This document shows, one piece after another, positions 17,521-58,433 of a DNA stretch of 64,000 nt. Location of the stretch: assembly GCA_964036045.1 (NCBI GenBank), contig OZ038379.1:3100001-3164000 (forward strand), in the 5' to 3' direction. Source of the stretch: Eutreptiella sp. 'Long Island Sound 2002'. Taxonomy: Eukaryota > Protista > Euglenida. Position 1 is the stretch's first letter; each line of letters begins with the position of its first letter. Both the position numbers and the translations under genes were made by a program. The notes below the pieces were generated by a model. That model saw only the letters and a program-made list of their open reading frames with translations. It was not told the DNA's origin and did not search any database.

Positions 17521-17699
17521 TATGCTTGCTCCCACTTGTGCCTGTGCATTGCATAGGAGGCAGGTGTGCACTGTGCGTCTCTTACACATAGGGCACTCTT
17601 TTATTTTAAACCTCCCCCTTGAGGTGAGAAAGTGAGTCTGGGGTCTAGACCGTCGCGTCTCTGACCCACACATTTGAGTTGGGCTTGCCCCAACACCCA

Positions 17700-18030
17700 C
17701 GCGTTCAACTCCCACGCACTGCGGGCCGCCGAGCCGCAGGAGTTGGCCCTCGGTCCCTGGCCACAGCGCCCCGACCAGGGTTGTCGTTCATCCCCCAACC
17801 CACCTACTGCGGGCCGCTGAGCCGCAGGAGTTGGCCCTCGGTCCCGGGCCACAGCGCCCCGACCAGGGTCGTCTTTCATCTCCCAACCCACCTACTGCAG
17901 GTCACCGAGCCGCAGAAGTTGGCCCTTGGTCCCCGGGCACAGCGCCCCGCCCAGGGTCGTCGTTCATCGCCCAACCCACCTACTGCAGGCCACTGAGCCG
18001 CAGAAGTTTGCCCTTGGTCCCCGGCCGCCG
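17700..18030 (+). repeat. 88-bp tandem repeat (~4 units) upstream of the helicase relic
   Basis: CCCAACC anchor at 17794, 17882, 17970 (88-bp period). Confidence 0.9.
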
Positions 18031-18078
18031 CGCCTCGACCTGGAAAACATGCCGAACACCAGCCGCAAAGGCCCTTCG

Positions 18079-18366
18079 CAGGGCAAAGGCCAAGGCCCTC
18101 CGCAGGGCAAAGGCCAAGGCCCTCCGCAAGGCAAAGGCCAAGGCCCTCAGCAGGGCAAAGGCAAAGGCCCTTCGCAAGGCAAAGGCCAAGGCCCTGCGCA
18201 AGGCAAAGGCCAAGCCCCTCCGCAAGGCAAAGGCCAAGGCCCTCCGCAGGGCAAAGGCCAAGCCCCTCCGCAAGGCAAAAGCGGAGGCCCTCCGCAGGGC
18301 AAAGGTCAAGGCCCTCCGCAAGGCAAAGGCGGAGGCCCTCCGCAGGGCAAAGGTCAAGGCCCTCCG
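18079..18366 (+). repeat. 24-bp tandem repeat x12, probably once coding (QGKGQGPP)n
   Basis: 12 units of CAGGGCAAAGGCCAAGGCCCTCCG; CAG/CAA and GGC/GGT variants are synonymous in the QGKG frame. Confidence 0.92.
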
Positions 18367-18389
18367 CCGGCCAAAGACAAGGCCCTTTG

Positions 18390-20820: not shown

Positions 20821-23070
20821 GAAAATCCAATAAACGTGGCGTACCAAAATGAAACTTTTTGGCAAAAATATGGAACATCCCCCCCTCAAATTGTCGCCTA
20901 ATGCCTTCCCGGGACCCTGAAGGGGGTGCTGCAATAATTTGACAGAAAGTCTTCAGTTTAATTTTGAGATAATGTGTCGACAAGTTTCAGCGCATTCCGT
21001 TGTGAAAGCACAGAGGTCTGACGCCATGCCATACCACACCATGCCAAGCCAAGACCGCCATGCCTTGGCTTGACAAGACGAGGCGAGCGAGCGCGCGCGC
21101 GGGGGCGGAGGGGGGTGCAATGGCAGTGTGGGTGAGTGATGGCAGTGGTCCAAAGTGAAAATTCCAACGGGTAGGGGCAAAGGTGCCACTTTACGAAGGC
21201 ACGCGTACAGCCGAGGCAACTGTCCCGCAGCAACCTGAAAATCCAATAAACGTGGCGTACCAAAATGAAAGTTTTTGCAAAAATATGGAACATCCCCCCT
21301 CTAAATTGTCGCCCAATGCCTTCCCGGGACCCTGAGTGGGGTACTGCAATAATTTGACAGAACGTCTTCATTTTAAGGTTGGGATATTGTGTCGACAAGT
21401 TTGAGCGCATTGCAAGATGAAAGCACCTAGGTCTGACGCCAAGCCATACCATACCATGCCAAGCCAAGACCGCCATGCCTTGGCTTGACAAGACGAGGCG
21501 AGCGAGCGCGCGCGGGGGGGCGGAGGGGCGGAGGGGGGTGCAATGGCAGTGTGGGTGAGTGATGGCAGTGGTCCAAAGTGAAAATTCCAACGGGTAGGGG
21601 CAAAGGTGCCACTTTACGAAGGCACGCGTACAGCCGAGGCAACCATCCTGCAGCAACCTGAAAATCCAATAAACGTGGAGTACCAAAATGAAACTTTCTT
21701 GCAAAAATATGGAACATCCCCCCTCTAAATTGTCGCCTAATGCCCTCCCGGGACCCTGAAGGGGGTGCTGCAATAATTTGACAGAAAGTCATCAGTTTAA
21801 GTTTCAGATAATGTGTCGACAAGTTTCAGCGCATTCCATTGAGAAGGCACAGAGGTCTGACGCCAAGCCATACCACACCATGCCAAGCCAAGACCGCCAT
21901 GCCTTGGCTTGACAAGACGAGGCGAGCGAGCGCGCGCGCGGGGGCGGAGGGGGGTGCAATGGCAGTGTGGGTGAGTGATGGCAGTGGTCCAAAGTGAAAA
22001 TTCCAACGGGTAGGGGCAAAGGTGCCACTTTACGAAGGCACGCGTACAGCCGAGGCAACTGTCCCGCAGCAACCTGAAAATCCAATAAACGTGGCGTACC
22101 AAAATGAAACTTTCTTGCAAAAATATGGAACATCCCCCCCTCAAATTGTCGCCTAATGCCTTCCCGGCACCCTGAAGGCGGTGCCGCAATAAAGTGACAG
22201 AAAGTCATCAATTTAAGTTTCAGATAATGTGTCGACAAGTTTCAGCGCATTCCGTTGTGAAAGCACAGAGGTCTGACGCCAAGCCATACCATACCATGCC
22301 AAGCCAAGACCGCCATGCCTTGGCTTGACGAGATGAGGTGAGCGAGCGCGCGGGGGGGGGCGGAGGGGCGGAGGGGGGTGCAATGGCAGTGTGGGTGAGT
22401 GATGGCAGTGGTCCAAAGTGAAAATTCCAACGGGTAGGGGCAAAGGTGCCACTTTACGAAGGCACGCGTACAGCCGAGGCAACCGTCCCGCAGCAACCTG
22501 AAAATCCAATAAACGTGGCGTACCAAAATGAAACTTTTTGCAAAAATATGGAACATCCCCCCTCTAAATTGTCGCCTAATGCCTTCCCCGGCACCCTGAA
22601 GACGTGCCGCAATAATTTGACAGAACGTCTTCATTTTAAGGTTGAGATATTGTGTCGACAATTTTTAGCGCTTTCCATTATGAAAGCACAGAGGTCTGAC
22701 GCCATGCCATACCACACCATGCCAAGCCAAGACCGCCATGCCTTGGCTTGACGAGATGAGGTGAGCGAGCGCGCGCGCGGGGGCGGAGGGGGGTGCAATG
22801 GCAGTGTGGGTGAGTGATGGCAGTGGTCCAAAGTGAAAATTCCAACGGGTAGGGGCAAAGGTGCCACTTTACGAAGGCACGCGTACAGCCGAGGCAACCG
22901 TCCCGCAGCAACCTGAAAATCCAATAAACGTGGCGTACCAAAATGAAACTTTTTGCAAAAATATGGAACATCCCCCCTCTAAATTGTCGCCTAATGCCTT
23001 CTCGGGACCCTGAATGGGGTACTGCAATAATTTGACAGAAAGTCTTCAGTTTAAGGTTGGGATATTGTGT
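20805..23070. repeat. ~420-bp tandem array, 5 full units plus a partial, alternating short/long units
   Basis: GCAGCAACCTGAAAATCC anchor at 20811, 21227, 21650, 22066, 22490, 22905 (spacings 416, 423, 416, 424, 415). Confidence 0.97.
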
Positions 23071-24929
23071 CTTTAGTAACCACGCGAATCGTTCCCTGTT
23101 GTGGATAACCAAAATTCACAATGAAACGTGCAACTGACCCTTAGGCCCTTCCATCTAGAAGCGCAACTAGCTGTGCACTGTTGTGAGCTGTAGAAGTATT
23201 ATATAGAGTCTCAAAGAGACCTTTCGTTTTGCCTTCAGATACCTCGCAATTTGCTTACCTTAACCTATAAAAGAACATGTGCACTTGAAGTTCATGTCCT
23301 TGCGTTGTTGACCATAGCAGCACATTTCAGGAGCTGAAGCCCACCCGGCTTTTCAAGTCAGGATTGGTCATTGGGCGCTAACGTGCACGAGTGCTGTGTA
23401 CCATGCATACCAGCCATCCCCACATGCACAAGAAAAGATGCCCCAAAAAACAACCAACGTCATGAACAACCCACACACCCCATTCCCACAAGGCACAGCC
23501 CGATTGCGTGACACACCAAAGCCGCAAACACCACCGCTCCACGCACCGTGCCTCCACGCAGAACAATCTCACCCCGGAGGTCCACACATGAAAGCCCAAC
23601 GCACCAGAGGCCTATGCACTACAACCTTACATGCCACAACCCCCCCACCACAATCATGCGGCATTTGATATGTGAGCTATAGCTCATTGTCCATGTTTGG
23701 TTAAAATCCTGCGCAGCAAAAGACCGCAGTCTGGGTCATGGCTTGTGTTGTGGCAAACGTCACCATACATGCAAATGGAAAGGCAAACTCAAAGAGGCAT
23801 CATCCGGGGGGTGTATTGGCTCCATTGCCTCGGTCTGCTTTGCATCAGCGGGGACTGTTTGAGGATAACTGGGTCATTGAAATGCACGGGCAGTGCGGTC
23901 ATGTCACCCGTTTGGGACAATGGGTCATGTATTTGAGGTGGGTGTTGTTCAGCGCATCGCCGGCTGCAGGTCAGCCCCGCCACACAGCGCAAGGAGCCCC
24001 TCAGGGACCCCATCCTGTTTGGAAGCAGGGCCGCTGACCTAACGAGGCCAGCAAACTGGGGGAGGGTCCCTGTTCAAGGCGAGGGATGCTGGTACATTCG
24101 GGTGGGTGGCCCTTCGTCATGGCAGTCGTGCGCCGCCCCCTCCACTGACTAACAAACCGGTCCTGCGGACCACGGGCAGCGCATATAACGTCATCCGGAC
24201 GCATGGCTGAGCTGGACACAACAACGGCGGCCTTTCTACGGGCCCAGACAGACAATTGCCGTGGAAGAGGGAGCTGTGCCCCAGGCGACTGGCACAATCC
24301 ATCCCCACCACTGTCGCACGGTGCAGGTAGTGCATGTCAAATATGTTGACTGAGAATCCGGCATCTCAGCCCTCTACCCATATCCGTGTGATCTTACAGG
24401 CGCTCTCTATGTTTCTCCGTTTCTTGTCACGGGCTTGGGAGGACCGCAGCAAATTTGGGGAGGGTGGGGGTTCAACCGCATAAACACCAGAAGGTCGCAC
24501 GCCGCTGAGGAGCCACCTCCAGTGGCCCACCAATACGGTCCCCAGCAACATGGAGCTGTGCCTTGAGGCAATGGGACTGGTGAGACTGAATTGTGCACTA
24601 ACGGGGGCCAATACAGCAACGCCGGTCCTCAAACGAACCCTCCCCGACACTCTGCAAGAGCACTGCGGCCGTTCATAGGAGAGAAACAGCGGACGGGCCA
24701 CTGCAAAAACGGGATGCCCCATGTTTTTGGGCCTGTCTGAACACATACAAAACAGCACCATTGGGGGAATGTTTGCCCGGCGCGCTACTTTTCTATTTAC
24801 TATCCCGAGTTCAGCCCCAGATTTACCCTCTCCTGGAGAAGCCCCCCAAGTAGACCACATTGCACTGCACACCTTCCCTACAAAACAAGTTGCATAATAA
24901 AGCAATATCTGTGAATTCAGCAACTCCAA

Positions 24930-25480: not shown

Positions 25481-27287
25481 CGGCGGCAGAGAATACCTTC
25501 AGGGGCTTTGGGCAGAGGAGCCTTTGTGCCGCGCACTGCACTGCACTGCACTGCACAACACTGCACTGCGCTCGGATCGTAGGACGCCAGGGAGGGACCG
25601 CAGCACGGGCCTTGGGGGTCATTGCTAGAAACCATCAACTTCTGCCACAGCTGCTACCCACCAATATCAACCCCCCTCCCCCCTCGTGGTGTCACTCTGC
25701 CTGTGACCCATGGGTCATGCAATGCAAGTGGTCCCACACAGCCTCAGCATTCTTCACTCCTGCACTCAGACAGCTCCGAGGCGCAGCAGTCATGATGAAA
25801 ACAGGTCCCTGCAAGACTGGTGCAAAGGAGGTATCACACTCCCTGTTGCCCCCCCGCCCCCCCTCCACCAGAGGAAACCTCTGCTACGTCAGTGCAGAGC
25901 ATACCGCAAAAGAAAAGCTCGGAAGTGACCATACATGACCATACGTACCTTTCAATGGGTACCCCCCTCCCGCGCGCCAATGGCAAAAATGCCTGGAAAC
26001 ACCACACACCACCAATGGGTAACACTGCGCGGTCTGGAACCCCGGCCCCGTGATACATTTCCCACATCACATGTGGGCACTCTCCGTATTTCACTGTCGT
26101 GCGAACGATTCAGTGTGCTACCTTGCCGACGCCGGTGTGGGAGGGACGCCAAGGGGCAGAAGCAGCATTTGTGGGCAGAGGGACAACTCTCACCCACCAA
26201 AGTACTGTTCCCCAGTGGCTTGCAGACAATTCCCTCCTGAAAACTCAAACCAGTGCGTACACCCGGAAGTACCAACCAGCACACCTCCTAAGCCTTTGTG
26301 GCACCGCCCCCCCTCCCCCGCGTGCAGGCCACAGCAACATGTGCACTTGCATGGTGCTTGGCAGTCCTGCAACTTGCTTCGAACTCCTCCAGTCCGATCC
26401 GCCCGTATTGTCTGTTTTCGCCGCTGGGCCGGGAAACAGGACAGGTCTTGACTCGGCTTACACCCCCCGGTCAGATGCATTGGGTCAAGAGGGGGGAGGG
26501 GGGGGTCACTCCTCCCCCCACAGATGCAGAAATTGTGGAGGGAAAGTTTGTGTCAAGCCCACGAATACCTTCCGCCATCAACCAACAGCTGCCATATTAA
26601 GTTGCACAATGGGGGGGGGGGGTTCCAGGACTGTTTCGAAACTGTGGCAAAGCAGCAAAAAGACCGCAGCGGTGGTCACAGCGTAAAAGTGAAAAACGAC
26701 AGACAGACAGCAGCATACCCAACCACCTACACACAGCAGAGGAAACTTTTGGGGTAGAAGGGGCGTTTGGGGGGGGGGGCATTTTGGGGGGTTTAAGGGT
26801 GCAAACGGTCAGGGTGCAATGTCCGCTTGCCAACCCAAAGTCGGAAGGTGCAATAACCTCCCATGATACAAGGAAATCAACGCCGGTTCAGTAGAGTCAC
26901 AGCTGTTTCCTACGGTCTGGGCTTGGTGTGGCTGGAGGCCAACCGGGGGGCGACTTTGGCCAAAAGAGACCAAAACTGTGTGGGAGGCTCGACGCACAGT
27001 TTGCAGCCGGCACGGTGTGTCGAACTCTCCGCCCCCCCAAGGAGAAGGCTGCTTATGACAGAGCGCAAACACGCGTCAGCACATGAAGCAGCGAAGAAGA
27101 GGCTCGTCAGCGGCAACTTAAATACCATCGGCACCTTTCCGCAGCAAAAAAAAAAGACGGGTGTTGAGCTGTTGTGAAGTGGAACTCCCACTTGAAGGGG
27201 AGGGCAGCAGGGAAGTGCCGCAGACGCTGAATGGCCGTGGGTGGGAAAAAAGGTTAGAGGGAGCAGGCGGCGGCGGTTACAAACCGT

Positions 27288-28445
27288 TGCAGCGGCAGTT
27301 GGAGTTGGACGGATGCGGCTGGGGCGTAACTGACTTGCTGTTGGGTGTGGGACCTCCCCGCGCTTCACGCGCAGCCCTGCTGACTGTTAGGGGCCTTTGC
27401 GAGACAAACGTGATCGTGCACCGCCACAACGTGGACCGAGTTGCTTGAGATGTCGGGAGGGATGTATCAGAAGAGAGGAAGGGGGGGGCGGATTTGGCAG
27501 CCAAATGTGTGTGTACCCAAAATGGCCCGACAAGATTTTCCCAATGGTAAATTTCGGTTTTTTCCACTGTGGTCACTTTGGTCGGGGGGGGGGGGGGGTG
27601 AGGTTCCAGGGGGGGGGGGGGGCATTCTAAGATGTCCCTGGACGTCGGGAAATGCCAGTTTCAAGCCAATCAGAAAAAAAAGCCCCGAATGTGCAGAATG
27701 GGCCAGGCCTACTCTCTACATGACCCTGAGCTACGGCTTGGAGTGAATGCTCGGTTCCTTCATGAACTCCTTCATTCGAAGCAGGTCGATGTCGTCGGGC
27801 ATCTGCCCTTTGACCCCGGGCATGGTGAGGGAGGACCAGCCTCTCTCGCGGATCATGCGCAGCCACTGGTTGTACACCACGTCCTTGACCTCGGCACTGG
27901 GCCCCACTTTGTCGTCCAGGGCCTTCAGCACTTGCCGGTTTCTCTGCTCCAAGTGCCTCATGGTGAACTCGTGCACGGCGCGCTCCACGGCGAGCTGCTT
28001 GGCCGACAGCGCGACGGCGGGGGCGACTTTGGGCTTCGTGTCGCGGATGGTCACATCCACCTTGACGTCCTCGGTGGGCTGCTGCTTCGGCACCGTGTGC
28101 TTCGGCGTCTCATGGAACACGAGGCGCCGGGTCATCTGCTTCCAAGCATCTCTTCCATGCTTCGAGGCCATATCCCAGATACAGTGGCTATGGCAAAGGA
28201 ACAAAGAGCGGGGGGGGCTTGCCCGGGCGCCGGGAAAAGCGGTCACAACAGTGCCTGGCGTCGCAGGGTCTCCCCAGAGACTGAAGGCGGCATCAGTCGC
28301 AGTGGGTTGTGTCGCTCGTTTGACATGCACCAACTAGGTTGGCGCCACATGCACACACACCCATGTACGTCCAATCGTCAACTCCAGAAGACATTTCCCC
28401 ATTCAACACATTCAGGCACGTAGATAGGCAGGCACATGCGCATAC
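27288..28445. repeat. Block A (1158 bp), left copy of the direct duplication flanking the retroelement
   Basis: Starts TGCAGCGGCAGTTGG, ends GCACATGCGCATAC; matches 36319-37477; ORF-track translations identical; only difference noticed is one G in a homopolymer. Confidence 0.97.
27731..28150 (-). CDS. Putative host exon or gene fragment of unknown function (left copy)
   Basis: QMTRRLVFHETPKH...MKEFMKEPSIHSKP shows a strong G/C third-position bias (gtc, gcc, aag, ctg) unlike its flanks; helical, charged sequence; boundaries uncertain. Confidence 0.5.
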   Translation of the reverse strand, partial: DAWKQMTRRLVFHETPKHTVPKQQPTEDVKVDVTIRDTKPKVAPAVALSAKQLAVERAVHEFTMRHLEQRNRQVLKALDDKVGPSAEVKDVVYNQWLRMIRERGWSSLTMPGVKGQMPDDIDLLRMKEFMKEPSIHSKP

Positions 28446-28879
28446 GCTGCAAGGGGCGAGCACAAGTACAAAAACTCCTCAGACAAACACGGCCATGCCC
28501 ATGAGGCTAGTGCAAACAAACAATGCAACAGTAGACAGGATGTTCTGGTGGCCCAAAGTCGGGCTGATTGCCCTCGGCACGCAAATACATAATGACAACA
28601 ACGACATTTCATCATCGGTAGGCATCTGTGGTCCCGGGCACACACCATATTCGACCCCTGGCGCCCATGGATCCTGTCCACTCTCGTTTTGTGTGGCACC
28701 AGACCCGCCTTTCGTTTCCATACCAAACTCAACCTGATTTATGTCAAAAATACACTGACTATGCGTTCACACAGGGCCTTACGTCCAGTATATGTGTCGC
28801 TCGCCACAGAGCACTCACACTGGCACCACAAATCAATGGTACTGCACAGCATGCGCAGAAACATCCTGAGATGAAACCA
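28446..28879 (-). repeat. Block B, 3' terminal repeat (pseudo-LTR), 434 bp
   Basis: GCTGCAAGGGGCGAG...GAGATGAAACCA, same as 35885-36318; includes the last 15 codons and stop of ORF2. Confidence 0.96.
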
Positions 28880-31800
28880 CTCCCGAGCCGCTGGTCGCTG
28901 CCGCCCGTTTGCCCTCCCGAACCCACGTGGTAACAGATCCCAGGGAAAACACCTCTAGAAGGTTATACTTCCGCAGAAAGCGTGTGAGACAGGGCAACCA
29001 CCAATGTTTGGGGTAAGAGTGCCAGCCTACGCCCCAGAGGAGGGAGCGAAAATTAGCCTGCACATCTGCAGTGGAACCCGCATACCACAGTGATTTGAGA
29101 AACAGGGACGGCAGCATAGACGCCAGCGTAAAGCTCGCGTTGGCTGAGCGGGCTGGGACCCACCTGAGCCACTCACCCAGCTCAGCGCCCTCAGCGATGT
29201 CCCAGATGACCCCTTTCCTGGTCAAAGAGAAGCCCAGGGGGAGGGGTTTCCATGAACACTCTCCCCAGGACACCCGTAAATCTGTAGGTTCCCATTTCAG
29301 GGGAACTCCATACAAACAGTCCAGGAAATGCTTCGCCGCATGGCGAACGCGAGGGAACAGGGCAGGATGGATGTTCATAAAAATTATGTAGATGTTATCA
29401 CGAAAACGTGAGAAAAGAATGCCTGGGCTGGTGGATATGGGGACAGCCGGGTCGGATGGGCGCGTCGCCCACCCCCACCACCCTCGACGGGCCTCGCTCA
29501 CCACAAAGTCCATGGGATCCAGTTCCCGAAAGAACTCTCGAAGCCGCGCCCTGTCTCGGGGGGGTGCACTCGCAATAACAGTACCCATGCGCCCATCCGG
29601 CGCTCCGTCCCAGAGGGAGGTCACCAGCAGGTCAACCCGCACCCCGTCCACGTCGAGGTACCCGAAGGAGGCATCAGTAGGCCCCCACCACCCTCCGAAC
29701 CCATCAGTACGCAAAGTACTGCTGTGCAAAAAGGGTCGGTCTGTGCTCCCGAGTACCCTGCCCAGTTTCTGTGACCCCCTGCAGGACGGGTGACAAACTT
29801 CGATAGGTTCCCGGACACACAGACGGATATCGGCCAGGGACGCTGGTGCACCCTCCTCACCTTTACGTACTGTCTGATCCCACGTCTTGACAAGACCAGA
29901 CCGGTGCTTACCAAAAATATACTTAAGCTCACGGGCAAGTGCCCAGAGTTCAGCAAGTTGCGCTGACAAATGTCCACCAATCGGGACACCCCGATCGCCT
30001 TGTTTCAGCAATAGCGGGCCCAGCACCAGCCCTGTGTTGTGGTGCAGGTCCCAGGAAACAAAGTCCAGCAATTCCTGCCGGGAGATAACCCTGAAGTCAG
30101 CACTACTCGCTGTACCCAGGCGATCAAGGGCCTTCTCCCCAGACTTATGCAGTGCAAAAAACTCCGCACATCCGCGCCTCTCTCCCTCCAAAAGCTCAAA
30201 CAGTTCATGCAGGGCCGGCACAACATCGCCCTTGGGGATATTCCAGAACATATCCGTCATGTCCGCCTCATCAGGGCGGACACTGGCCCAGACCGGGTTG
30301 AACCTGCCCAAGGACCCCAGTAAATCACGTACTCCTACCATACTCGGCATGCCCAATGTCTGGAACTGCCGGTACACTTCGCTGACAATGAGCTGTAGTG
30401 ATCTGCTCATGAGGCGTGCATACGAGCGCAGGATGTGGAGCTTAAAGGACACAATATCGCGCCATTTAACAATGGCCTGTGCCCCACGTTCAACCGTCTT
30501 CCATTTCAAAATGGAAAAAATCGAGGGCGCACCAAAAAGTGGCCGCTGATGCTGGCGTTGGGGGCCTGGGTCTAAATCTACAGTGTCTCCAGGGGAAGGT
30601 GGAGGTTCCGGGTCGGTATAGACCGAATTAATGTGAGTTGCAGCCCAAGAAAGATCTGCATACCCTTTACGCAGGAGATTGTGATGAATCGCACAGTCCA
30701 CAATCCCATGTGCTTGGGCAGAGGTCAGTGTATCATACACATTCGCTGCTTGGGCAGCAGCTTTGGACTCTGCCACGCCCCACAAAATAAAGCGGTCCCC
30801 TCCCAAGTAGGATCCCACCACATGGTCCTCTTCCAACACCCTGCATGCACCGGACATCCTGTGGAGCTGTTTGTCCCAAATCCCTGCGCGAAAGCGAAGG
30901 TCCCAGATGCGTTTAGAGAGCCCGGAAACATGCTCGCTGCCCAATGTGGGGCACTCCAGTGTATACGCAGAGATGTCCGCAAGACAAAAATTATGCACCC
31001 ATTCAACAATAGGTGCTATATCGTCTCCGGAAAGCAAGGAACTCGCTGACACAGGCGGGTATAGCGCAGAGGAAGAGGACGCAGGGGTCGTGGGGAGCGA
31101 GGGAGGGATTTGGGAGAGGGAGAGAGAGGCAGAAGCCAGAGAGGGAGAGATGCCAGACGCGGAGGGAAGAAAACCCTCTGCGGGTACAGTCATGCGTTGC
31201 AGGGACGTCTGGAACAGCTCCATCTGAGCTGCCAGCACATCTATGGAAGGAATGACGCACTGACGCGCATTGCTGCTGAGGGTATCAGCCCCTTCGTCAC
31301 TGAAAAGACACGCCCATTGTGATCTAGTGCGCAGGACAACATGTCCCAGATCGTTCCGTAGGGCAGGATGCTGTCGCATCAATGCAGCACATGTGCATCG
31401 TCGCCCTTGCCTTCGCGCGAGCTGTCGTTGTATCTCTTGCACTACACGCGGCTGAACTTCAGAGGGTTCTTTGAAGACCCATGCTCGCTGCTGCCCCCCC
31501 ACAAGGAAAGGCGACGCGTCGTAGGTTCCAAGTTTAATACCAGAGACCAGCTCGTCTGCAGTCATGCGAACAGTACGTAAGGCAGCCCCTCCCCTGAATA
31601 CATCTTTAAGTTTATGGGCTTGCAAAGGTAGAACAGACAATGCACGGGAAAGCCATGCCTTGAGGGTTTGCGGTACATCATGCTGCGCAATCTGTGACCT
31701 GAGGCTCCTCTTAATGCCATTGATGGTATGCCTGTGGTAGGTAGGAACCCGTACGATAAAACGACGTTGCAATTCAACACCCCACGTGCGTTTCACTACA

Positions 31801-33824
31801 CCCTGGACTGCGCGAAAGAAGGAATCAAACAGGCGGCCTGGGATTTTCCCCAATGAAGAGGTTAGTAGATCAAGCAGATCCTCTACTCCCTGGTCGGTAT
31901 CCTTACTGCTCCTCACTTTCCAGAGTACATCGTTCACACGCTGGGACAGTGTTTTGGCTTCAGATGAAGTCTCCTCCCGCAGGCTCCACCGCCACCGCAG
32001 TTCGCCTATCCCCCACCCTCTCGCTGGGTCAATTTGATTCAGGGTGGGGGCCAGTACACTGTCAAAGTGCGACTCGACATTAAACGCTTCTCGTGGCGGG
32101 TCCACCTTCTGCAGCAGTACCATCGAGGCTTGGTGACCCCCCACTCTGGCTAGCACTCTAGACAGGGAGGGTGTTTTTCCAAACCCCAACTGACATCTCA
32201 TTCGTCTGTGTCTGTTGCCCAGGAACAGGTTCCTGAGTGATTTGGCTCTGGACAGATGTTCCTTATAGCGCTCCAGAGGTGCCCTCGGACCCTGCAGAAA
32301 ACCAACTTGACCTACATACGGCAGGAAGGCTCCCACCATAACATAGATCCATGTGTCTTCTATCGTCAGTGGTGTATCCAAGGGGAGGCGTGACAGGCGC
32401 ACAGCTCGTCTCAGTCGGGCATCAGGGCAGTCCTTGAGCAGCTGGTTGCTGCGCATAAGAGACTCCGCAACCATGTCCCATTTCACACATCGGGATTTTA
32501 GAAGTTGTGCACGCACATCGGCTTCTTCATCCCAGGCCGCCCAGAATTCTGAAAGCAAGGCCAGTTGCTCTTCCCTGGTAGGAAAGGGTGAATCTGAACC
32601 CACCAGACCCGGTAGAGGCCCGTACCATGCTCCTGAGCCTGTGGACTTAATGATGTTCTTCACAGCCACACCAAACCTCCTGGCATCCACACCGCACCCT
32701 ACTTCTGCCGTACCTCCATCTATCAACCACCATTCCCATATACCCTTCTGCCAGTACCAGACTTCTTGGCCTGTTGCGCTCTGGTCGAACGCACGAACCT
32801 TTAATCTGGATTGTGCACCGAATTGTACAGCACGGCCGTCATTGGCCCATTTTTCTAAAACACCATTCCATCCACGATTGTGTTCCCTGTTATGTAAAAC
32901 GCACAGTCGAAAATTCGGATCGTGTAGGCGATCCTCCACCTTTGCAGAGAATTCAAAGGGTGCAACATCGGATCTCAGGAAAAACTTCCTCGTCGAGTCG
33001 GACATTGCAAAAACATTATCTAGAACACCGTCAAAGTATAGACACTCCGGAATATCCGTTGCATACATCGGCAGGCCTGCAGACCAGGGGCTCCCAAATA
33101 GCATGCAGTTGATTCCCAGAACGTCACGCAGAAAATCTTCTGCTCCGCCTGTCAATCTACATCCTAAGCCTCGTCTACTATGCATAATTTCCACAAGGAT
33201 AATGGCGTATTCGCAAAACTGCTGGACTTCAGCCGGCGTCACTTCAGACCATGTCCTCACTCCATTGGTCGCCGCATAGCCGTCCCATAGAGGTCGCAGG
33301 GATCTGTTCCTGGCCAAGACGCTGGCAAATGTATCAACAGTAGCGCATTCTTGTAGAAACCGCAAAATGGGAAGACATACACTCTTCTGACCCGCAAACA
33401 GATTTTCTGATTGAGTAGAGGACATATCGGCTCTATCACTATCTTCCGATGGATCCACACTCCGTTGCGTCGAAGAAGAGGAAGAGGAGAGTGGGGAGAA
33501 TGGGTCAGAGTCCAGAGTAGCGTTGCTCTGTAACCCTGCCTCTAAGCAAACAGCCTCTGATGGTGCCTGGGGATCTGCTCGTCCACTGTGATTGTCGCTC
33601 ATGTAGGCAATACAGGTCCCAGGAGCCATCGGAGGTTCGTCGATCTCAGTAGTAGGCATTTCTAGTATTCGCTGATCGTCACAAATAGTGGAGCGCAGAA
33701 AGGTAGCGGCTTGCTCCAGGTCATTGATAGCTCGCGCCCTCTCCAAATCTTCTCGTGCGTGTTGTAGAAGAAGTTCACGCAGTGTCGGAGAGAGCACAGA
33801 AAACGAAGTCCCTGTACTCGTCAT
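28833..33824 (-). CDS. ORF2 polyprotein, 1663 aa: putative MTase-like domain, GIY-YIG endonuclease, reverse transcriptase
   Basis: GIY-YIG: WIY-x8-YVG, ERYKEH, VESHF, PTLN (aa ~492-596). CTC...GHVV linker. RT: DMTDMFWNIP (D1188), GVPIGGHLSAQLA (aa 1279), RFRDN (D1476). No stops over 5 kb. Confidence 0.93.
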   Translation of the reverse strand: MTSTGTSFSVLSPTLRELLLQHAREDLERARAINDLEQAATFLRSTICDDQRILEMPTTEIDEPPMAPGTCIAYMSDNHSGRADPQAPSEAVCLEAGLQSNATLDSDPFSPLSSSSSSTQRSVDPSEDSDRADMSSTQSENLFAGQKSVCLPILRFLQECATVDTFASVLARNRSLRPLWDGYAATNGVRTWSEVTPAEVQQFCEYAIILVEIMHSRRGLGCRLTGGAEDFLRDVLGINCMLFGSPWSAGLPMYATDIPECLYFDGVLDNVFAMSDSTRKFFLRSDVAPFEFSAKVEDRLHDPNFRLCVLHNREHNRGWNGVLEKWANDGRAVQFGAQSRLKVRAFDQSATGQEVWYWQKGIWEWWLIDGGTAEVGCGVDARRFGVAVKNIIKSTGSGAWYGPLPGLVGSDSPFPTREEQLALLSEFWAAWDEEADVRAQLLKSRCVKWDMVAESLMRSNQLLKDCPDARLRRAVRLSRLPLDTPLTIEDTWIYVMVGAFLPYVGQVGFLQGPRAPLERYKEHLSRAKSLRNLFLGNRHRRMRCQLGFGKTPSLSRVLARVGGHQASMVLLQKVDPPREAFNVESHFDSVLAPTLNQIDPARGWGIGELRWRWSLREETSSEAKTLSQRVNDVLWKVRSSKDTDQGVEDLLDLLTSSLGKIPGRLFDSFFRAVQGVVKRTWGVELQRRFIVRVPTYHRHTINGIKRSLRSQIAQHDVPQTLKAWLSRALSVLPLQAHKLKDVFRGGAALRTVRMTADELVSGIKLGTYDASPFLVGGQQRAWVFKEPSEVQPRVVQEIQRQLARRQGRRCTCAALMRQHPALRNDLGHVVLRTRSQWACLFSDEGADTLSSNARQCVIPSIDVLAAQMELFQTSLQRMTVPAEGFLPSASGISPSLASASLSLSQIPPSLPTTPASSSSALYPPVSASSLLSGDDIAPIVEWVHNFCLADISAYTLECPTLGSEHVSGLSKRIWDLRFRAGIWDKQLHRMSGACRVLEEDHVVGSYLGGDRFILWGVAESKAAAQAANVYDTLTSAQAHGIVDCAIHHNLLRKGYADLSWAATHINSVYTDPEPPPSPGDTVDLDPGPQRQHQRPLFGAPSIFSILKWKTVERGAQAIVKWRDIVSFKLHILRSYARLMSRSLQLIVSEVYRQFQTLGMPSMVGVRDLLGSLGRFNPVWASVRPDEADMTDMFWNIPKGDVVPALHELFELLEGERRGCAEFFALHKSGEKALDRLGTASSADFRVISRQELLDFVSWDLHHNTGLVLGPLLLKQGDRGVPIGGHLSAQLAELWALARELKYIFGKHRSGLVKTWDQTVRKGEEGAPASLADIRLCVREPIEVCHPSCRGSQKLGRVLGSTDRPFLHSSTLRTDGFGGWWGPTDASFGYLDVDGVRVDLLVTSLWDGAPDGRMGTVIASAPPRDRARLREFFRELDPMDFVVSEARRGWWGWATRPSDPAVPISTSPGILFSRFRDNIYIIFMNIHPALFPRVRHAAKHFLDCLYGVPLKWEPTDLRVSWGECSWKPLPLGFSLTRKGVIWDIAEGAELGEWLRWVPARSANASFTLASMLPSLFLKSLWYAGSTADVQANFRSLLWGVGWHSYPKHWWLPCLTRFLRKYNLLEVFSLGSVTTWVREGKRAAATSGSGVVSSQDVSAHAVQYH

Positions 33825-35764
33825 GGTGCTGCAGTCCCAGAGGTAGAAGCAGTTCCATCAGTGAGGCAAGGGCGTTTCAGAGGTTTACCCGCGTTCAACT
33901 CGTCCGCTGCTACGTGTGCAGCTTCTTCCCAAAAGAAGACCTTGTCGAAGGTGTTCATTTCCCACGTGTCAAAAGGGCATGCCTCAGCACTCTCCAGAGC
34001 CGGTTCCAGCGGGTTCTGGATGGTCACAGCGCTGGAAGGTCCCAGTACCAAGTGCCCCGCAGGTCGCAGTCCAACAGACCTCACTGTGACGACCTGGTGA
34101 GTCCTCTCTGGGGGTCCATCCGACACTGCAGCAGGCCCCGGCGCTAGGACCACCATATGCAGTCCCTGACCAGTATGGCTAAGGGCGTGCACTCCTTCGT
34201 TCCTCCTCTTAATTGCGGGCGGCGTCAGCAAAGAACCCCTGCATTGCAGGAGCGCCGCCATATCGACCATTTTCCACTCCTGTGCAGGACGCCACCCAAG
34301 CTGCCATTCCCTCAGCTCATTCGCTTTAGGGGTAGCGCCCTGATTTTCTGTCGCAGTCGGAGCGTCCGAGTGGTCCATCATCGTCAAGTCTTCAGAAAAG
34401 GCGGACACTCGGTTGTCATCCGATGAGTTGGAAATAGAAATGCGTCCTGAATGTAGAGGCATGTCAGCGCCCATAGTAAGCAGACTCTCAGCCGTGGGTG
34501 CTGCAGGTCCCGACTTGGTGTCCTCGAGGGTCGCAAGCCGCATCTTCTCCTCGATCTGGGGATCGAGACTCGGGGGCAGCTCAGCCAGGGCCGCTTCTTT
34601 TGCCTGCTGCATCAGGGCATTCACCTCGTCCGGGGAGACACCGCCGACCTTGACCAGAAGTGTGCCCATCAAACTCTGGGAGACACTGGTGGAGCGCTTC
34701 AGATCCGTCACAGACTGATCGATACGGCCCAGCTGCTGCCAAATGTGTTTGCGGTCCTCGGTCAGGGTTTTTAACGACTCTTCAGCATCCTGCACTCGGG
34801 CGTTCAGGGCGTGCGCGGGAAGGCCGACGATAGCGGGCTGCATTCTCGAGCTGGGCGGTGTTTTCGCTAGCGATAGGCTCGGAGTGGAGGTCGACGGGTT
34901 CAGGGCGATCTGAAAGGAGTTGTTCGGTCCGTTCAGTGCAGTGGCCACCAGATCTGTAGCAGGGTCACCCGCGCGATCCCGTTTGCCCCGTTTCGGTTTC
35001 AACTTCTTCTTCCCCTTCCCCTTCGAGGACGAGACGTCACGGGGCTGAAAAGCAAAACCCTGTGCCTGACCAGCAGTGCCTGGTGGTGCAGGCAACGCCA
35101 GCACATTCGAGTCGTTCACTGGTGGCGCACTCGCTGGTAGCAGTGAATGCTGAAAGAACTCAGCAGTAGGCGCGTCCTTCACAGGTTGCGGGGGTGTGGT
35201 CTTCGGATCGGTTCCGTCGTCCCATCGCGGAAGCCCAGTGGCTGCCTCCATCACTGCAGCCAGGAACTCTCGATCCGACATCCGGGGCCACCTGGAAGTA
35301 TCCACCTCCAAATTCTCAGCGATCTGGTACCGGGTGTAGCGCTTCTCCCGTACATCACGCAGAATTTTGTGCCAATAATCACGGTTCGAGGTCCAGCGAT
35401 CAGAGTCAGCCTGGCACCATCTGTGATTCGTTGGAAAATGAACGCCTGAAAGATGTCCAAACTTCTTACAGAGATAGCACGGATTTCCCATTTTGTGTTC
35501 GGCCTTACCCAGCGCTTCAGAGTTGCTGTGGTCCACTTGTTTGAGGTCAAACCGCGGCAAGACGTCGTCAGTGTGGGACCCACCTTGGCGAGGTTCTTTA
35601 GTCGGAGAGGATCGCGGAGGAGAACGTCGCTGTTTCCGACTCCCATTTCCTTTCCTCTGTTTTTGCTGCACTTGTTGCCCGTCAGCCATTAGAGAGCGCA
35701 CTGCATGCGCAGTAGCATCGCCAATGAGCTTGGCCATTTTATCGGATGGAACGAAGGAAGACAT
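33821..35764 (-). CDS. ORF1, gag-like protein with CX2CX4HX4H knuckle and coiled coil (first ATG 35764; frame open to 35830)
   Basis: CYLCKKFGHLSGVH; basic N-terminal stretch (KQRKGNGSRKQRR); heptad-like RVQDAEESLKTLTEDRKHIWQQLGRIDQSVTDL; stop overlaps the ORF2 start (ATGA). Confidence 0.85.
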   Translation of the reverse strand: MSSFVPSDKMAKLIGDATAHAVRSLMADGQQVQQKQRKGNGSRKQRRSPPRSSPTKEPRQGGSHTDDVLPRFDLKQVDHSNSEALGKAEHKMGNPCYLCKKFGHLSGVHFPTNHRWCQADSDRWTSNRDYWHKILRDVREKRYTRYQIAENLEVDTSRWPRMSDREFLAAVMEAATGLPRWDDGTDPKTTPPQPVKDAPTAEFFQHSLLPASAPPVNDSNVLALPAPPGTAGQAQGFAFQPRDVSSSKGKGKKKLKPKRGKRDRAGDPATDLVATALNGPNNSFQIALNPSTSTPSLSLAKTPPSSRMQPAIVGLPAHALNARVQDAEESLKTLTEDRKHIWQQLGRIDQSVTDLKRSTSVSQSLMGTLLVKVGGVSPDEVNALMQQAKEAALAELPPSLDPQIEEKMRLATLEDTKSGPAAPTAESLLTMGADMPLHSGRISISNSSDDNRVSAFSEDLTMMDHSDAPTATENQGATPKANELREWQLGWRPAQEWKMVDMAALLQCRGSLLTPPAIKRRNEGVHALSHTGQGLHMVVLAPGPAAVSDGPPERTHQVVTVRSVGLRPAGHLVLGPSSAVTIQNPLEPALESAEACPFDTWEMNTFDKVFFWEEAAHVAADELNAGKPLKRPCLTDGTASTSGTAAP

Positions 35765-35884
35765 CGAAGGAGCTTGAACGATATCGAGGTAATACCGCGA
35801 ATGTCGAAAGTGAACTTGTACTTGAATCAACGGAGGACAATGGAAGGTACACGCGTTTCAGTCGCACGCGTGTTAGAGCCACAG

Positions 35885-36318
35885 GCTGCAAGGGGCGAGC
35901 ACAAGTACAAAAACTCCTCAGACAAACACGGCCATGCCCATGAGGCTAGTGCAAACAAACAATGCAACAGTAGACAGGATGTTCTGGTGGCCCAAAGTCG
36001 GGCTGATTGCCCTCGGCACGCAAATACATAATGACAACAACGACATTTCATCATCGGTAGGCATCTGTGGTCCCGGGCACACACCATATTCGACCCCTGG
36101 CGCCCATGGATCCTGTCCACTCTCGTTTTGTGTGGCACCAGACCCGCCTTTCGTTTCCATACCAAACTCAACCTGATTTATGTCAAAAATACACTGACTA
36201 TGCGTTCACACAGGGCCTTACGTCCAGTATATGTGTCGCTCGCCACAGAGCACTCACACTGGCACCACAAATCAATGGTACTGCACAGCATGCGCAGAAA
36301 CATCCTGAGATGAAACCA
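35885..36318 (-). repeat. Block B', 5' terminal repeat (pseudo-LTR), 434 bp
   Basis: Same sequence as 28446-28879; abuts block A' directly. Confidence 0.96.
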
Positions 36319-37477
36319 TGCAGCGGCAGTTGGAGTTGGACGGATGCGGCTGGGGCGTAACTGACTTGCTGTTGGGTGTGGGACCTCCCCGCGCTTCACG
36401 CGCAGCCCTGCTGACTGTTAGGGGCCTTTGCGAGACAAACGTGATCGTGCACCGCCACAACGTGGACCGAGTTGCTTGAGATGTCGGGAGGGATGTATCA
36501 GAAGAGAGGAAGGGGGGGGCGGATTTGGCAGCCAAATGTGTGTGTACCCAAAATGGCCCGACAAGATTTTCCCAATGGTAAATTTCGGTTTTTTCCACTG
36601 TGGTCACTTTGGTCGGGGGGGGGGGGGGGGTGAGGTTCCAGGGGGGGGGGGGGGCATTCTAAGATGTCCCTGGACGTCGGGAAATGCCAGTTTCAAGCCA
36701 ATCAGAAAAAAAAGCCCCGAATGTGCAGAATGGGCCAGGCCTACTCTCTACATGACCCTGAGCTACGGCTTGGAGTGAATGCTCGGTTCCTTCATGAACT
36801 CCTTCATTCGAAGCAGGTCGATGTCGTCGGGCATCTGCCCTTTGACCCCGGGCATGGTGAGGGAGGACCAGCCTCTCTCGCGGATCATGCGCAGCCACTG
36901 GTTGTACACCACGTCCTTGACCTCGGCACTGGGCCCCACTTTGTCGTCCAGGGCCTTCAGCACTTGCCGGTTTCTCTGCTCCAAGTGCCTCATGGTGAAC
37001 TCGTGCACGGCGCGCTCCACGGCGAGCTGCTTGGCCGACAGCGCGACGGCGGGGGCGACTTTGGGCTTCGTGTCGCGGATGGTCACATCCACCTTGACGT
37101 CCTCGGTGGGCTGCTGCTTCGGCACCGTGTGCTTCGGCGTCTCATGGAACACGAGGCGCCGGGTCATCTGCTTCCAAGCATCTCTTCCATGCTTCGAGGC
37201 CATATCCCAGATACAGTGGCTATGGCAAAGGAACAAAGAGCGGGGGGGGCTTGCCCGGGCGCCGGGAAAAGCGGTCACAACAGTGCCTGGCGTCGCAGGG
37301 TCTCCCCAGAGACTGAAGGCGGCATCAGTCGCAGTGGGTTGTGTCGCTCGTTTGACATGCACCAACTAGGTTGGCGCCACATGCACACACACCCATGTAC
37401 GTCCAATCGTCAACTCCAGAAGACATTTCCCCATTCAACACATTCAGGCACGTAGATAGGCAGGCACATGCGCATAC
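36319..37477. repeat. Block A' (1159 bp), right copy of the flanking duplication
   Basis: Matches 27288-28445; continues without a break into the CAGACAGG-rich tract at 37478+. Confidence 0.97.
36763..37182 (-). CDS. Second copy of the putative host exon
   Basis: Translation identical to the 27731-28333 ORF. Confidence 0.5.
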   Translation of the reverse strand, partial: DAWKQMTRRLVFHETPKHTVPKQQPTEDVKVDVTIRDTKPKVAPAVALSAKQLAVERAVHEFTMRHLEQRNRQVLKALDDKVGPSAEVKDVVYNQWLRMIRERGWSSLTMPGVKGQMPDDIDLLRMKEFMKEPSIHSKP

Positions 37478-37640
37478 ATCAGCCGATAGGTACATAGACG
37501 GGCAGACAGGCACATAGGTATGCACCGGCACATAGACAGGCCGGCAGGCACATACAGGCACACAGACCACGTAGACAGGCAGTAGACAGGCAGACAGGCA
37601 GACGGACAGGACCAGACAGCCACACAGACAGGACTGGGGA
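37478..37640. repeat. Low-complexity CAGACAGGCA-like tract
   Basis: Degenerate short repeats visible in sequence. Confidence 0.8.
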
Positions 37641-38579
37641 TGGATTTCAAGAAGTCATTAGCACGAGTAATCAATGAGTGACTGCACAGACAGGCAGCAG
37701 AACCCCTTCAGTCATTCGCCATGGGTAGCACTCCGAAGCATGCTTTCAGCCCACAGCATCTGCAGTCTATGCGACTCGGATTACGAGGTGACAGAAAGTA
37801 CGTTCGGTCAACTTGAGGGGTTGCATTGCAACCAAACGTCGTTTTGATTTTCCCCAGGACCAATACCTATTGCATGAGGGTGCCTGAGGTCGCGGGCAGG
37901 TCGCGGGGCAGGTCGCGGGGCGGACGCGGGGCGCGGTCATTGAAGGGGGCACCAGAAATTGGCCACTTACCAGCCCCTTTGGCCCCAAAATGCACAATTT
38001 ACCCCCAAGGGCGGACGCGGGGCAGGCACCCTCCATGGTCAAGGGTCAAGCAACGTGACTTTCTCGATGCCCAAATCCCTGTGCTTGTCCTTGTCCTCGT
38101 GCCAACTGGCATAATTGATTGATTGTCAACCACACCGGTTGGCCCTCTAGGGACTGCGTTGTCGGTCGACAGTACGATGCAAGGATGGAGAGAAGAGCAA
38201 GAAGAGCAGGGAGGGGGAGGTTTTAGGCGGATATTTGCACACGGCACCTGCACAGCACTTGGTTAGGGTTAGGGTTATCCCATCCAGTTACAATTTAGCA
38301 GGGTAGAATGGTTTTCGCTCTGTTCTCAACAACATGAAATAGCCTCATCATGGACAAACCAGCCCCCAATAGCTTCTTCAACACTAGGGCATACCGACAC
38401 TACAACTAGGACTTTTCTCGAGCATAGACGGACAGACAAACAAAAAGCAGACAAACAGATGGAGTGAGTCTAGCTACAAATTAGCAACTTGTTGTCGTTG
38501 AGGCAGTCCAATGCAACTATTCGAACACGCCCAAGCTATTCAAAGCCCACTGAGAGGGCGAAAGTGCAGATCGCGCAAT

Positions 38580-39097
38580 TATATCCGGGGCATGGGCCCG
38601 AGGATATCGGCAGATATCCGGGGCATATGACCCGGGATACAGCAGCGGTGATATCCTGGTGTGTACCATGTGTCTTGTGCCAAGCTCAGGTTTCCTCCGA
38701 AGTTTGGTTCCTGGGCCTGCGAATCTTGTGTCACCAACATGATTGGCTCCCAATAAGAATTGGGCCTAATGCCCCGGATATCTGTGCTGTGTCCCGGGGC
38801 ATATTCCGCTTTTACCTCACCTTCCTCCTTGTCAGGGTCGTGGTAGCGCGAAAGAATGTGGGCAGCCTTTTCAACCCTCTCCTTGTCTTTGCGGTGATTT
38901 TGGGTAGAATAGCGGTTTTTTCGGTTAAAAAGTGGAAATCGTTGCTAACAGGCTCATTGGAACCGCCTCGGAAAGGCGGCTTCATTGATTGGTCACAACC
39001 CTAGGTGATTTTGTTGTTCGCGGTGGTTAAATCTACAAGTTTGATGATTTGCTACATGCCCCGGGGATATCAGCAGATATCCGGGGCATATGACCGT
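38580..39097. repeat. Cluster of GATATCCGGGGCAT(A) motifs, possibly subterminal repeats of a decayed element
   Basis: GATATC..GCAGATATCCGGGGCATATGACC at ~38603 and ~39068; inverted copy near 38770. Confidence 0.55.
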
Positions 39098-58300: not shown

Positions 58301-58433
58301 CTGTGAGGTGAAAAGGCTGCGTGGCAAGAGGCTTTGCAGAGTGGCGTGAAGATAAAGAAGGGGCATTACAGGAACATTTAGATGTGGTGTGGCGGCGCCT
58401 GCAGAAAACTTCTCAAAATGCCCTACATACATA

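Follow-up and report, generated by a model that had tools for sequence, protein, structure and literature searches.

Telomerase has its closest mobile relatives in the Penelope-like elements (PLEs), whose mechanism of retrotransposition is still poorly understood. Among them, the elements with an N-terminal endonuclease (EN), named Naiad and Chlamys, have been defined by Craig et al. (2021; PMC8557442), with a CxC motif as their diagnostic linker. Chlamys elements are hosted by green algae, Chara, Selaginella, Physarum and Ectocarpus (PMC8557442; PMC12477816), and the published variants include Chlamys-2_cBra, which has an upstream gag-like open reading frame (ORF) with a zinc knuckle, and Chlamys-1_cBra, which has an ORF of ~1,800 amino acids (aa) (PMC8557442; PMC12477816). 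Here, we describe an element of 7,439 nt on the minus strand of a stretch of DNA from Eutreptiella sp. 'Long Island Sound 2002' (GenBank assembly GCA_964036045.1, contig OZ038379.1, positions 3,100,001 to 3,164,000 of the forward strand). The full 64,000-nt stretch is called the window below, and positions refer to it unless they are given as unit positions, which are counted within the element. Placed by the fold of its reverse transcriptase (RT) and by a set of markers rather than by an RT tree, the element is probably a Penelope-like retrotransposon with an N-terminal endonuclease (Chlamys-like type) that is autonomous and has recently been active. A search of the literature turned up no publication on a lineage of this kind.

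Self-BLAST of the window gives the layout A-B-[internal]-B-A across the insertion, that is, two nested pairs of direct repeats, and the boundaries of the element unit were fixed by seven independent copies with unrelated flanks (Table 1). The upstream repeat is a pseudo-long terminal repeat (pLTR), namely a partial upstream tandem copy, which contains the 3' untranslated region (UTR) and the preceding 47 nt of ORF2 with its stop codon. The outer repeat 'A' is not part of the element. Both statements follow from the comparison of the copies, because these share the 3' terminus, have variable pLTR starts and lie between unrelated flanks. The configuration in which 'A' would belong to the element, A-B-X-B-A being read as an LTR or as a split repeat of the DIRS/Ngaro type, was rejected, since the independent copies stop at the B/A boundary and continue into unrelated flanks; 'A' also has neither TG...CA ends nor a flanking short duplication. 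Inverted 5'-truncated partner copies, which are common in PLEs, were not found at the window locus.

A first-pass annotation of the window had delimited the insertion at 28446-36318, which is exactly B-internal-B, and all the features that it listed were found where it had placed them, on the minus strand. The two terminal direct repeats (28446-28879 and 35885-36318) are indeed 434 bp long and 100% identical, the ORF2 stop codon (28833-28835) does lie inside the repeat, and the ~5-kb ORF2 (28833-33824, 1,663 aa) has no internal stops. A separate ORF1 exists as well, but its length is 647 aa, since the proposed 648 aa counted the stop codon. This length is obtained from the first ATG (35764) and matches the public gene call, while a TTG start would give 33821-35830 with 669 aa. 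The stop codon of ORF1 and the start codon of ORF2 overlap as ATGA. Three features had escaped the first-pass annotation: the outer pair of repeats 'A', the R-D-N of motif C, and the fact that neither the RT nor the endonuclease is recognised by any sequence-profile library.

The RT of ORF2 is best seen in its predicted structure. The AlphaFold2 (AF2) model of ORF2 aa 950-1663, built on a family alignment of 112 sequences, has a pLDDT of 88.2 and a pTM of 0.88. In a Foldseek search of this model against the PDB, ranks 1-8 are all telomerase reverse transcriptases (TERTs), with E-values of 6e-5 to 7e-3, prob of 0.99-1.00 and ~640 aligned columns, and these come from Candida, Tetrahymena, yeast and human (6zd1, at 6.3e-5, 6zdq, 7lma, 9swn and 7trd). 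The first non-TERT RT appears at an E-value of 2e-2, and DRT2, R2, the group II intron RT, the retron RTs and Prp8 all have E>=2e-2; the R2/LINE, group II intron, DRT and retron RTs are two to three orders of magnitude worse than the best TERTs. A grouping with LINE, DIRS or group II intron RTs, which the first-pass annotation had considered as the outcome that would speak against a PLE, did not appear in this structure search, made with the RT model only, and the closeness to telomerase RT is one of structure, not of sequence phylogeny.

The RT motifs of the family are well conserved. In the family alignment, motifs 1/2 read LKWK...KWRDIVSF (K 22/22, R 23/25), motif A reads E-x-DM-x-DMFW-x-IP (D 31/35), motif B reads QG-x-x-GVPIGG-x-LSAQ (Q 41/42) and motif D reads PLKWE (K 53/56), followed by motif E and then by RKG; motifs A, B and C lie at ORF2 aa 1188, 1275 and 1474, respectively. 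The spacing of 87 aa between motifs A and B, which holds a conserved helix-strand-strand-helix block, is consistent with an IFD, as judged from its length and predicted structure. The spacing between motifs B and C is as large as 199 aa because a folded domain of ~165 aa is inserted there, for which AF2 predicts a confident mixed alpha/beta fold; in the relatives P0183, P0184 and P0186, which have the same RDN, this spacing is 186-202 aa. Motif C itself reads S-R-[FY]-[RK]-D-N-x-Y-I (D in 47/51 and N in 48/52 family representatives), and its R-D-N occupies the turn of the catalytic beta-hairpin in the model. The second catalytic Asp of motif C is essential in the RTs that have been studied. 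Another candidate for motif C, the YLDVDG hairpin in the B/C insertion, was rejected, because the family members do not conserve it and it does not lie at a hairpin turn, and because the canonical motifs D and E come after R-D-N.

In ORF2, an N-terminal extension, a GIY-YIG-like endonuclease, the CxC linker, a DK motif and the telomerase-like RT follow each other in this order. The family alignment of the endonuclease segment reads IY...PYVGQ...R-x-P-x-x-R-x-x-EH...PSL...E...LAPTLN, with Y494 (19/19), Y503 (20/20), G505 (19/20), R514 (20/20), H523 (21/21), E584 (22/24) and N596 (21/25) conserved. Several domains make up the AF2 model of aa 150-960 (pLDDT 69, pTM 0.40), and within it the endonuclease segment reaches a pLDDT of ~85-95 and shows the topology beta-beta-alpha-alpha-beta-alpha, as GIY-YIG catalytic domains do. 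Of the top 50 Foldseek matches in BFVD, at least 13 are annotated as GIY-YIG or intron-associated endonucleases. One BFVD match is a 91-aa protein with prob 1.00, TM 0.69 and rmsd 3.2 Å, and the matches include GIY-YIG proteins of iridoviruses and PBCV-1, the groups that are nearest to the PLE endonucleases according to the literature. Motif and model are thus consistent with a GIY-YIG-type endonuclease at aa 492-596, through matches that are individually weak. The first-pass annotation had proposed such a domain upstream of the RT, in the Naiad/Chlamys arrangement, and had made its proposal depend on a GIY-YIG fold being predicted for aa 490-600; the near-invariant motif residues, the predicted topology and the BFVD matches all agree with it, and the arrangement is joined by the CxC linker, the DK motif and the lack of a hammerhead (see below).

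The endonuclease core contains no Cys and so no CCHH motif; a single Cys lies upstream, with no CX2-5CxxC finger. In the CxC linker, C810 (11/15), C812 (12/15) and H828 (14/14) are conserved, and the same order is kept in the 32%-identical relative P0184. The D and K of the WDK motif are present in 13/13 family members and also in P0184. The model of the N-terminal extension weakly resembles Alba-fold proteins and PCIF1/MT-A70-like methyltransferases (Foldseek E 3.5e-3 to 0.1, the aligned region per match not being reported); the Alba-fold matches are Pop6/Pop7 and Rpp20/Rpp25, which also serve as subunits of telomerase/RNase P. In place of the DPPW of MT-A70 enzymes, this N-terminal module has GSPW/NPF, and therefore the methyltransferase motif is probably degenerate. 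In the gag-like ORF1, a zinc knuckle is accompanied by a helical region in the centre and a C-terminal block that is conserved. The same architecture is found in ORF1 relatives at 61%, 57%, 51% and 23% identity, and in seven aligned ORF1 relatives, including the 23%-identical sister family L009, the second Cys and both His of the knuckle are kept in 7/7 and the first Cys in 6/7. Judged from these sequences, ORF1 is ancestral to the clade, since L009 has the same two-ORF design. The ORF1, the ~490-aa N-terminal extension and the RT insertion, which had been pointed out as extra parts, are all real and conserved in relatives.

The further copies of the element were taken from the same assembly (ENA ERZ25074135, where the window is part of the 422-kb contig ctg9654_29x_l) via their proteins and compared with the window unit 28446-35884. 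Including the window copy, at least six full-length copies exist in this assembly. All the copies share the 3' terminus ...CCCCTTGCAGC without poly(A), which is the 3' end of the window unit, and only the last base of L012 deviates. Every full-length copy is preceded by a pLTR of 417-434 nt (n=6), which starts at unit position 7006 in the window copy and at 7009, 7010, 7010, 7012 and 7023 in the others, that is, within a span of 17 nt. Partial tandems forming pLTRs and 5' truncation are thus both found, the latter in L004 and L011. In the distant copy L002 (62% aa identity), the homology also ends at the B/A boundary, and the last ~75 nt at the 3' end are ~85% conserved.

The five young copies are 99.66-100% identical and differ at 34 substitution sites in 7.4 kb. 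Both ORFs are intact in four of the five, and the sole indel within the ORFs is an in-frame deletion of 9 nt. The changes in the ORFs comprise 15 nonsynonymous and 16 synonymous ones, compared with a neutral expectation of 71-76% nonsynonymous changes (binomial P = 0.001-0.007), and this reflects purifying selection. Among the private changes of the window copy, which number nine, seven are synonymous, and therefore this copy derives from a slightly different source lineage that is itself under selection. The element had been called very young and active beforehand, and the pLTR that is 100% identical to the 3' repeat, the high identity of five copies, four of them intact, and the ratio of 15:16 all bear this out. 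In addition, the same assembly contains the sister family L009 (6488-14007), which has the same succession of pLTR, ORF1 and ORF2 and is only 32% (ORF2) and 23% (ORF1) identical to the window element at the amino acid level. Because its repeats of 466 bp are 100% identical, at least two deeply diverged lineages of the clade are currently young in one genome. Further relatives, L001 and L002, are 55-65% identical, and a conserved PP1 phosphatase gene adjoins one relative. The protein of this gene is a singleton at 90% identity, with no relative at >=90% among 15 billion proteins.

The interruption in L008 (13028-16323) is a nested insertion of 3.3 kb, at whose edges unit positions 3138-3147 overlap by 10 nt. 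The final 711 bp of this insertion match L001:66-767, which adjoins a piggyBac-like (DDE_Tnp_1_7) gene, at 96% identity, and the insertion probably represents a further mobile element of this genome, in which copia, gypsy and piggyBac-like elements also occur.

The outer repeats 'A' call for an explanation of their own. The two copies are 1,158-1,159 bp long and differ by a single internal 1-nt indel; in self-BLAST they form the pair 27281-28445 and 36313-37477 (1,166 aligned bp, 99.7%), with true homology from 27288 and 36319. We consider 'A' to be probably an unusually long target-site duplication, and it is known from the literature that PLE target duplications vary in length, with variably spaced nicks. 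The repeats adjoin both element ends to the base, and with one indel in 1,158 bp they are as young as the insertion. The 5' terminus of the element and the host DNA at 27281-27285, just beyond 'A', have a microhomology of 5 nt in common (AAACC on the plus strand), which is the expectation for 5'-end joining in target-primed reverse transcription (TPRT). Moreover, 'A' was absent from all the other loci compared, including the flanks of seven other copies, and is not a dispersed repeat in the DNA compared. All these points argue against the alternative that the 'A' repeats were already duplicated in tandem before the insertion, arose by a later rearrangement or are an artefact of the assembly. 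This alternative, the less probable of the two, nevertheless keeps some weight, since no long target duplication was detected at seven of the eight copies, which also weighs against the interpretation of the element as a whole; L007 shows another kind of local duplication, one of its own empty site; and the contig comes from a metagenome assembly.

In L007, the element sits exactly between two segments, T1 and T2 (9353-9452 and 17320-17582), of which T1 begins in a (CAACA)n tract, and an intact, 100%-identical copy of the 363-bp T1T2 'empty site' is present at L007:18947-19307, 1.6 kb downstream. Each 'A' copy contains an ORF of 263 aa on the plus strand, with no Pfam match.

How does the element compare with the described groups? 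With Chlamys it has in common the GIY-YIG domain before the RT, an endonuclease with neither the CCHH nor the CX2-5CxxC zinc motif, the CxC linker, a DK motif whose third residue is not fixed, an A-to-B spacer of IFD length, pLTRs derived from partial tandems, 5' truncation and a unit length that lies within the published 3.3-8.2 kb. It also lacks a canonical hammerhead, as most Chlamys elements do: no hammerhead or other ribozyme was found by an Rfam search at E<=1 over 26000-39000, by a gathering-threshold scan of the window or by a regular expression for the hammerhead core. The differences from Chlamys lie in the RT, which is invisible here to Pfam or any sequence profile, in the Asp-Asn of motif C and the ~165-aa domain between motifs B and C, in the conserved ~260-aa region upstream of the endonuclease, in ORF1, whose knuckle is CCHH instead of CCHC and which is conserved clade-wide, and in the lack of evident (CA)n/(C)n targeting. 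The first-pass annotation had called the element structurally unusual, and this is true of the divergent RT and the extra domains; however, both two-ORF elements and elements of ~1,800 aa had already been published for Chlamys. The Naiads of invertebrates are similar in their N-terminal endonuclease, CxC, a spacer consistent with their IFD, pLTRs and missing hammerhead, whereas they keep CCHH, CX2-5CxxC and DKA, are 3.4-4.4 kb long with a single ORF and insert into (TA)n targets. Penelope/Poseidon, Neptune, Nematis and Hydra resemble the element in the TERT-related RT with a GIY-YIG nickase, the pLTRs, the variable target duplications and a TPRT-type mechanism, but theirs is a C-terminal endonuclease with CCHH, accompanied by hammerheads in the pLTRs and a single ORF. 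TERT itself is the best structural match, over ~640 columns and with an IFD-like spacer between motifs A and B, yet the element is dispersed in multiple copies, carries a nuclease and ORF1, has no telomerase-specific function, and differs in the DN of motif C and the B/C insertion.

Several results weigh against the assignment to PLEs. Neither RT nor GIY-YIG could be recognised by sequence: when the family members in the RT-region alignment (n=112) and the EN-region alignment (n=23) were scanned singly against Pfam at E<=1, RT models were matched by 0/112 and GIY-YIG models by 0/23. The Pfam scan of ORF1 and ORF2 revealed no RT, GIY-YIG or zinc-knuckle (zf-CCHC) domain, and the NCBIfam and PHROGs scans recognised neither RT nor GIY-YIG; the only match in Pfam, NCBIfam or PHROGs, to Secretin_N (E 0.004-0.008, below cutoff), was discarded as noise. 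Among the PDB sequences, nothing relevant was found by phmmer or profile search. HMMER against 1.84 billion representative proteins retrieved 734 relatives at E<=1e-3, 54 of them at E<=1e-30, all being short fragments without names in ENA and JGI assemblies, and a profile search among 5.8 billion proteins retrieved family members only, none of which is named or has a Pfam domain, and reached no annotated RT. PLE RTs were not retrieved by any of these searches (Pfam, PDB profile and 5.8-billion-protein profile), although Naiad RTs retrieve the canonical PLE RTs by BLAST (PMC8557442). The structural evidence has its weaker sides too. The GIY-YIG matches in BFVD are individually weak (E 8e-3 to 8e-2), and the PDB search with the N-terminal model gave no GIY-YIG protein in the top 50, where weak Alba-fold and methyltransferase matches lead. 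The TM-scores to TERT are low (~0.3), which fits the extra inserted domain and a differing domain orientation in the model. Two aspartates in motif C, as expected of an RT, are replaced by a conserved Asp-Asn. The flanks of the eight copies, a small sample, share no microsatellite that would indicate a (CA)n/(C)n insertion bias, and a (CAACA)n tract is found next to L007 only. Finally, the transcription, the coupling of translation and the TPRT of the element are steps that we infer.

Could the element then represent a separate class of retroelement with a telomerase-like RT, sister to or outside the known PLE clades, which acquired its GIY-YIG domain independently? The extreme divergence, with no Pfam or PDB profile match for any member and only unnamed members reached among 5.8 billion proteins, would favour this, as would traits unique to the clade, namely the Asp-Asn motif C, the 165-aa B/C insertion, the conserved N-terminal extension and the obligatory ORF1. 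However, the non-catalytic markers of Naiad/Chlamys are all in common: CxC in the same position, DK, the spacer of IFD length, an endonuclease without CCHH, the pLTRs and the missing hammerhead. A joint convergence of these markers is unlikely, and both two-ORF and ~1,800-aa forms of Chlamys have already been published. Consequently, a separate class appears improbable, and a Chlamys-like PLE is preferred. A more ambitious proposal within reach of the same data, which we put forward with considerable doubt, is that the family forms a deep, superfamily-level branch with GIY-YIG and telomerase-like RT, which would be missed by the current RT and nuclease profiles and, with its 734 relatives, be widespread in environmental eukaryotes. 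Such a branch would have a naturally active Asp-Asn RT with an inserted domain of its own, and its N-terminal module (of Alba-like and/or methyltransferase-like fold) and obligatory CCHH-knuckle ORF1 would add steps to the PLE life cycle that are absent from all described PLEs.

Taking the element as a Chlamys-like PLE, the following cycle may be proposed. Transcription would start from an internal promoter close to the upstream pLTR's 5' edge (~unit position 7006) and run to the end of the downstream repeat. Since six independent insertions start within 17 nt, a fixed 5' end of the RNA is more plausible than random truncation, and an internal, downstream promoter has been reported for Penelope in the literature. 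The leader that would result (35765-36318, minus strand), which consists of the pLTR and 120 nt, amounts to 554 nt before the ATG of ORF1 and contains 12 ATG triplets. These upstream ATGs suggest either that the 5' UTR has an intron or that transcription begins downstream of the pLTR edge; by analogy with Penelope and Chlamys-3_cRei, for which 5'-UTR introns are described in the literature, such an intron in the leader is possible. ORF1 and ORF2 would be translated from one RNA, with termination-reinitiation at the AUGA overlap as the probable route to ORF2. The target DNA would be nicked by the GIY-YIG domain, and the RT would prime on the 3'-OH and copy the RNA, which has no poly(A) tail, from ...UUGCAGC, as in TPRT. 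Incomplete copying could yield the 5'-truncated copies, with the 5' end joined via microhomology. In the case of the window copy, a break of the second strand 1,158 bp from the first would have produced the long target duplication.

In this cycle the RT presumably functions with Asp-Asn in motif C, because the family is mobile and under purifying selection. Alternatively, the R-D-N of motif C may impair the RT of ORF2, the copies being mobilised in trans by the RT of another element. HIV-1 RT and TERT cannot do without the second Asp, and other RT-bearing elements (copia, gypsy) do exist in the same genome. However, RNA-virus polymerases with a GDN motif C are active, and Asn is kept in motif C of 48 of the 52 diverged representatives while all the other RT motifs are preserved, which would be unexpected for a dead enzyme. 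In ORF2 the young copies show 9 nonsynonymous and 11 synonymous changes and no frameshifts, and the 3' end, the pLTR and the pattern of 5' truncation are PLE-like and differ from the products of LTR elements. Mobilisation in trans is therefore very unlikely, and the preferred reading remains that of an autonomous element with its own working RT.

A two-ORF LINE such as L1 is similar to the element in its nucleic-acid-binding ORF1 and EN-RT ORF2, its 5' truncation, the microhomology at the 5' junction and the inferred internal promoter, and is different in having APE or RLE in place of GIY-YIG, while the RT described here is nearer to TERT than to R2, poly(A) is missing and pLTRs are present. 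Hence a LINE-like non-LTR element, or an LTR/DIRS-type element with LTRs of 434 bp, as the gag-like ORF1 with a large ORF2, the 5'-truncated copies and the flanking direct repeats might suggest, can hardly be defended, since the R2/LINE RT structures fit far worse than TERT, the Pfam scan of the ORFs detected no APE, RLE nuclease, RNase H, integrase, protease or tyrosine recombinase domain, the copies end without poly(A) or a simple-repeat tail, and an upstream repeat with a variable start and an ORF2 end is a partial tandem copy, not an LTR.

The element bears on several questions. Whole clades of PLEs miss the RT annotation based on Pfam, and are thus undercounted in surveys of transposable elements in protists and metagenomes. 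A natural, apparently active Asp-Asn RT makes the metal-binding requirement of the 'essential' Asp-Asp directly testable, and the several intact, near-identical two-ORF source copies offer a start for the in vitro PLE system that the field lacks. The clustered 5' ends of the pLTRs and the 1.16-kb duplication bear on pLTR inheritance and on the spacing of target nicks.

Table 1. Positions of the element, its parts and the adjoining repeats in the window, and the further copies from the same assembly
Feature	Position	Strand	Description
Full-length unit	28446..35884	-	7,439 nt: 120-nt leader, ORF1, ORF2 and 387-nt 3' UTR
Upstream pLTR	35885..36318	-	Partial tandem copy, truncated at its 5' end, of the unit's last 434 nt
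3' terminal repeat (ORF2 end and 3' UTR), template of the pLTR	28446..28879	-	Self-BLAST
ORF1	33821..35764	-	647 aa + stop, gag-like, intact
ORF1 zinc knuckle CX2CX4HX4H (CYLCKKFGHLSGVH)	35438..35479	-	CCHH variant of the retroviral CCHC knuckle
ORF2	28833..33824	-	1,663 aa + stop, ATG start
Conserved part of the N-terminal extension	32415..33197	-	ORF2 aa ~210-470; blocks kept in deep relatives
GIY-YIG-like endonuclease	32037..32351	-	ORF2 aa 492-596
CxC linker	31305..31397	-	ORF2 aa 810-840: C-x-C ... HP-x-L-x-N-x-x-GH-V-x-LR ... QW
WDK motif	30870..30878	-	ORF2 aa 983-985; counterpart of the PLE 'DKG/DK' motif
RT core	29190..30542	-	ORF2 aa ~1095-1545; motifs 1/2, A, B, C, D, E
Inserted domain between motifs B and C	29424..29918	-	~165 aa, ORF2 aa ~1303-1467
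RT motif C hairpin R-D-N	29394..29402	-	ORF2 aa 1475-1477, instead of x-D-D
C-terminal helical (thumb/CTE-like) region	28875..29189	-	ORF2 aa ~1546-1650; AF2 helices at model residues 594-697
'A', downstream copy (element sense), non-element	27288..28445	.	Self-BLAST
'A', upstream copy (element sense), non-element	36319..37477	.	99.9% identical to 27288-28445
Copy L005			Full length; 99.66% identity to window unit
Copy L006			Full length; 99.79% identity to window unit
Copy L007			Full length; 99.76% identity to window unit
Copy L008			Full length, interrupted by 3.3-kb nested insertion; 99.4-99.8% identity to window unit
Copy L012			Full length, older; 96-97% identity to window unit
Copy L004			5'-truncated; 96.7% identity to window unit
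Copy L011			5'-truncated; ~96% identity to window unit

The window is repeat-rich throughout, and no tRNA gene, Rfam RNA gene or ORF with a Pfam domain was found in its 64 kb. Satellite arrays with a unit of 41 bp (and a sub-repeat of ~20 bp) occupy 1275-2220 and 5659-15231; the latter array, of 9.5 kb, contains ~230 copies with ~84% identity between units and shows strong GC and AT skew. This satellite region lies between two short, inversely oriented arrays of an 88-bp repeat (813-1155 and 17711-18040), the second of which adjoins a 24-bp array (18068-18386). A tandem unit of 415 bp is repeated 5.4 times at 20803-23071 with ~92-95% identity, overlapped by an ORF of 271 aa (20958-21773, minus strand) that has no Pfam match. 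In addition, small tandem arrays (137-bp and 41/123-bp units) and scattered direct repeats of 85-125 bp with 88-90% identity are located at 47897-48257, 49985-50292 and 52166-58528.

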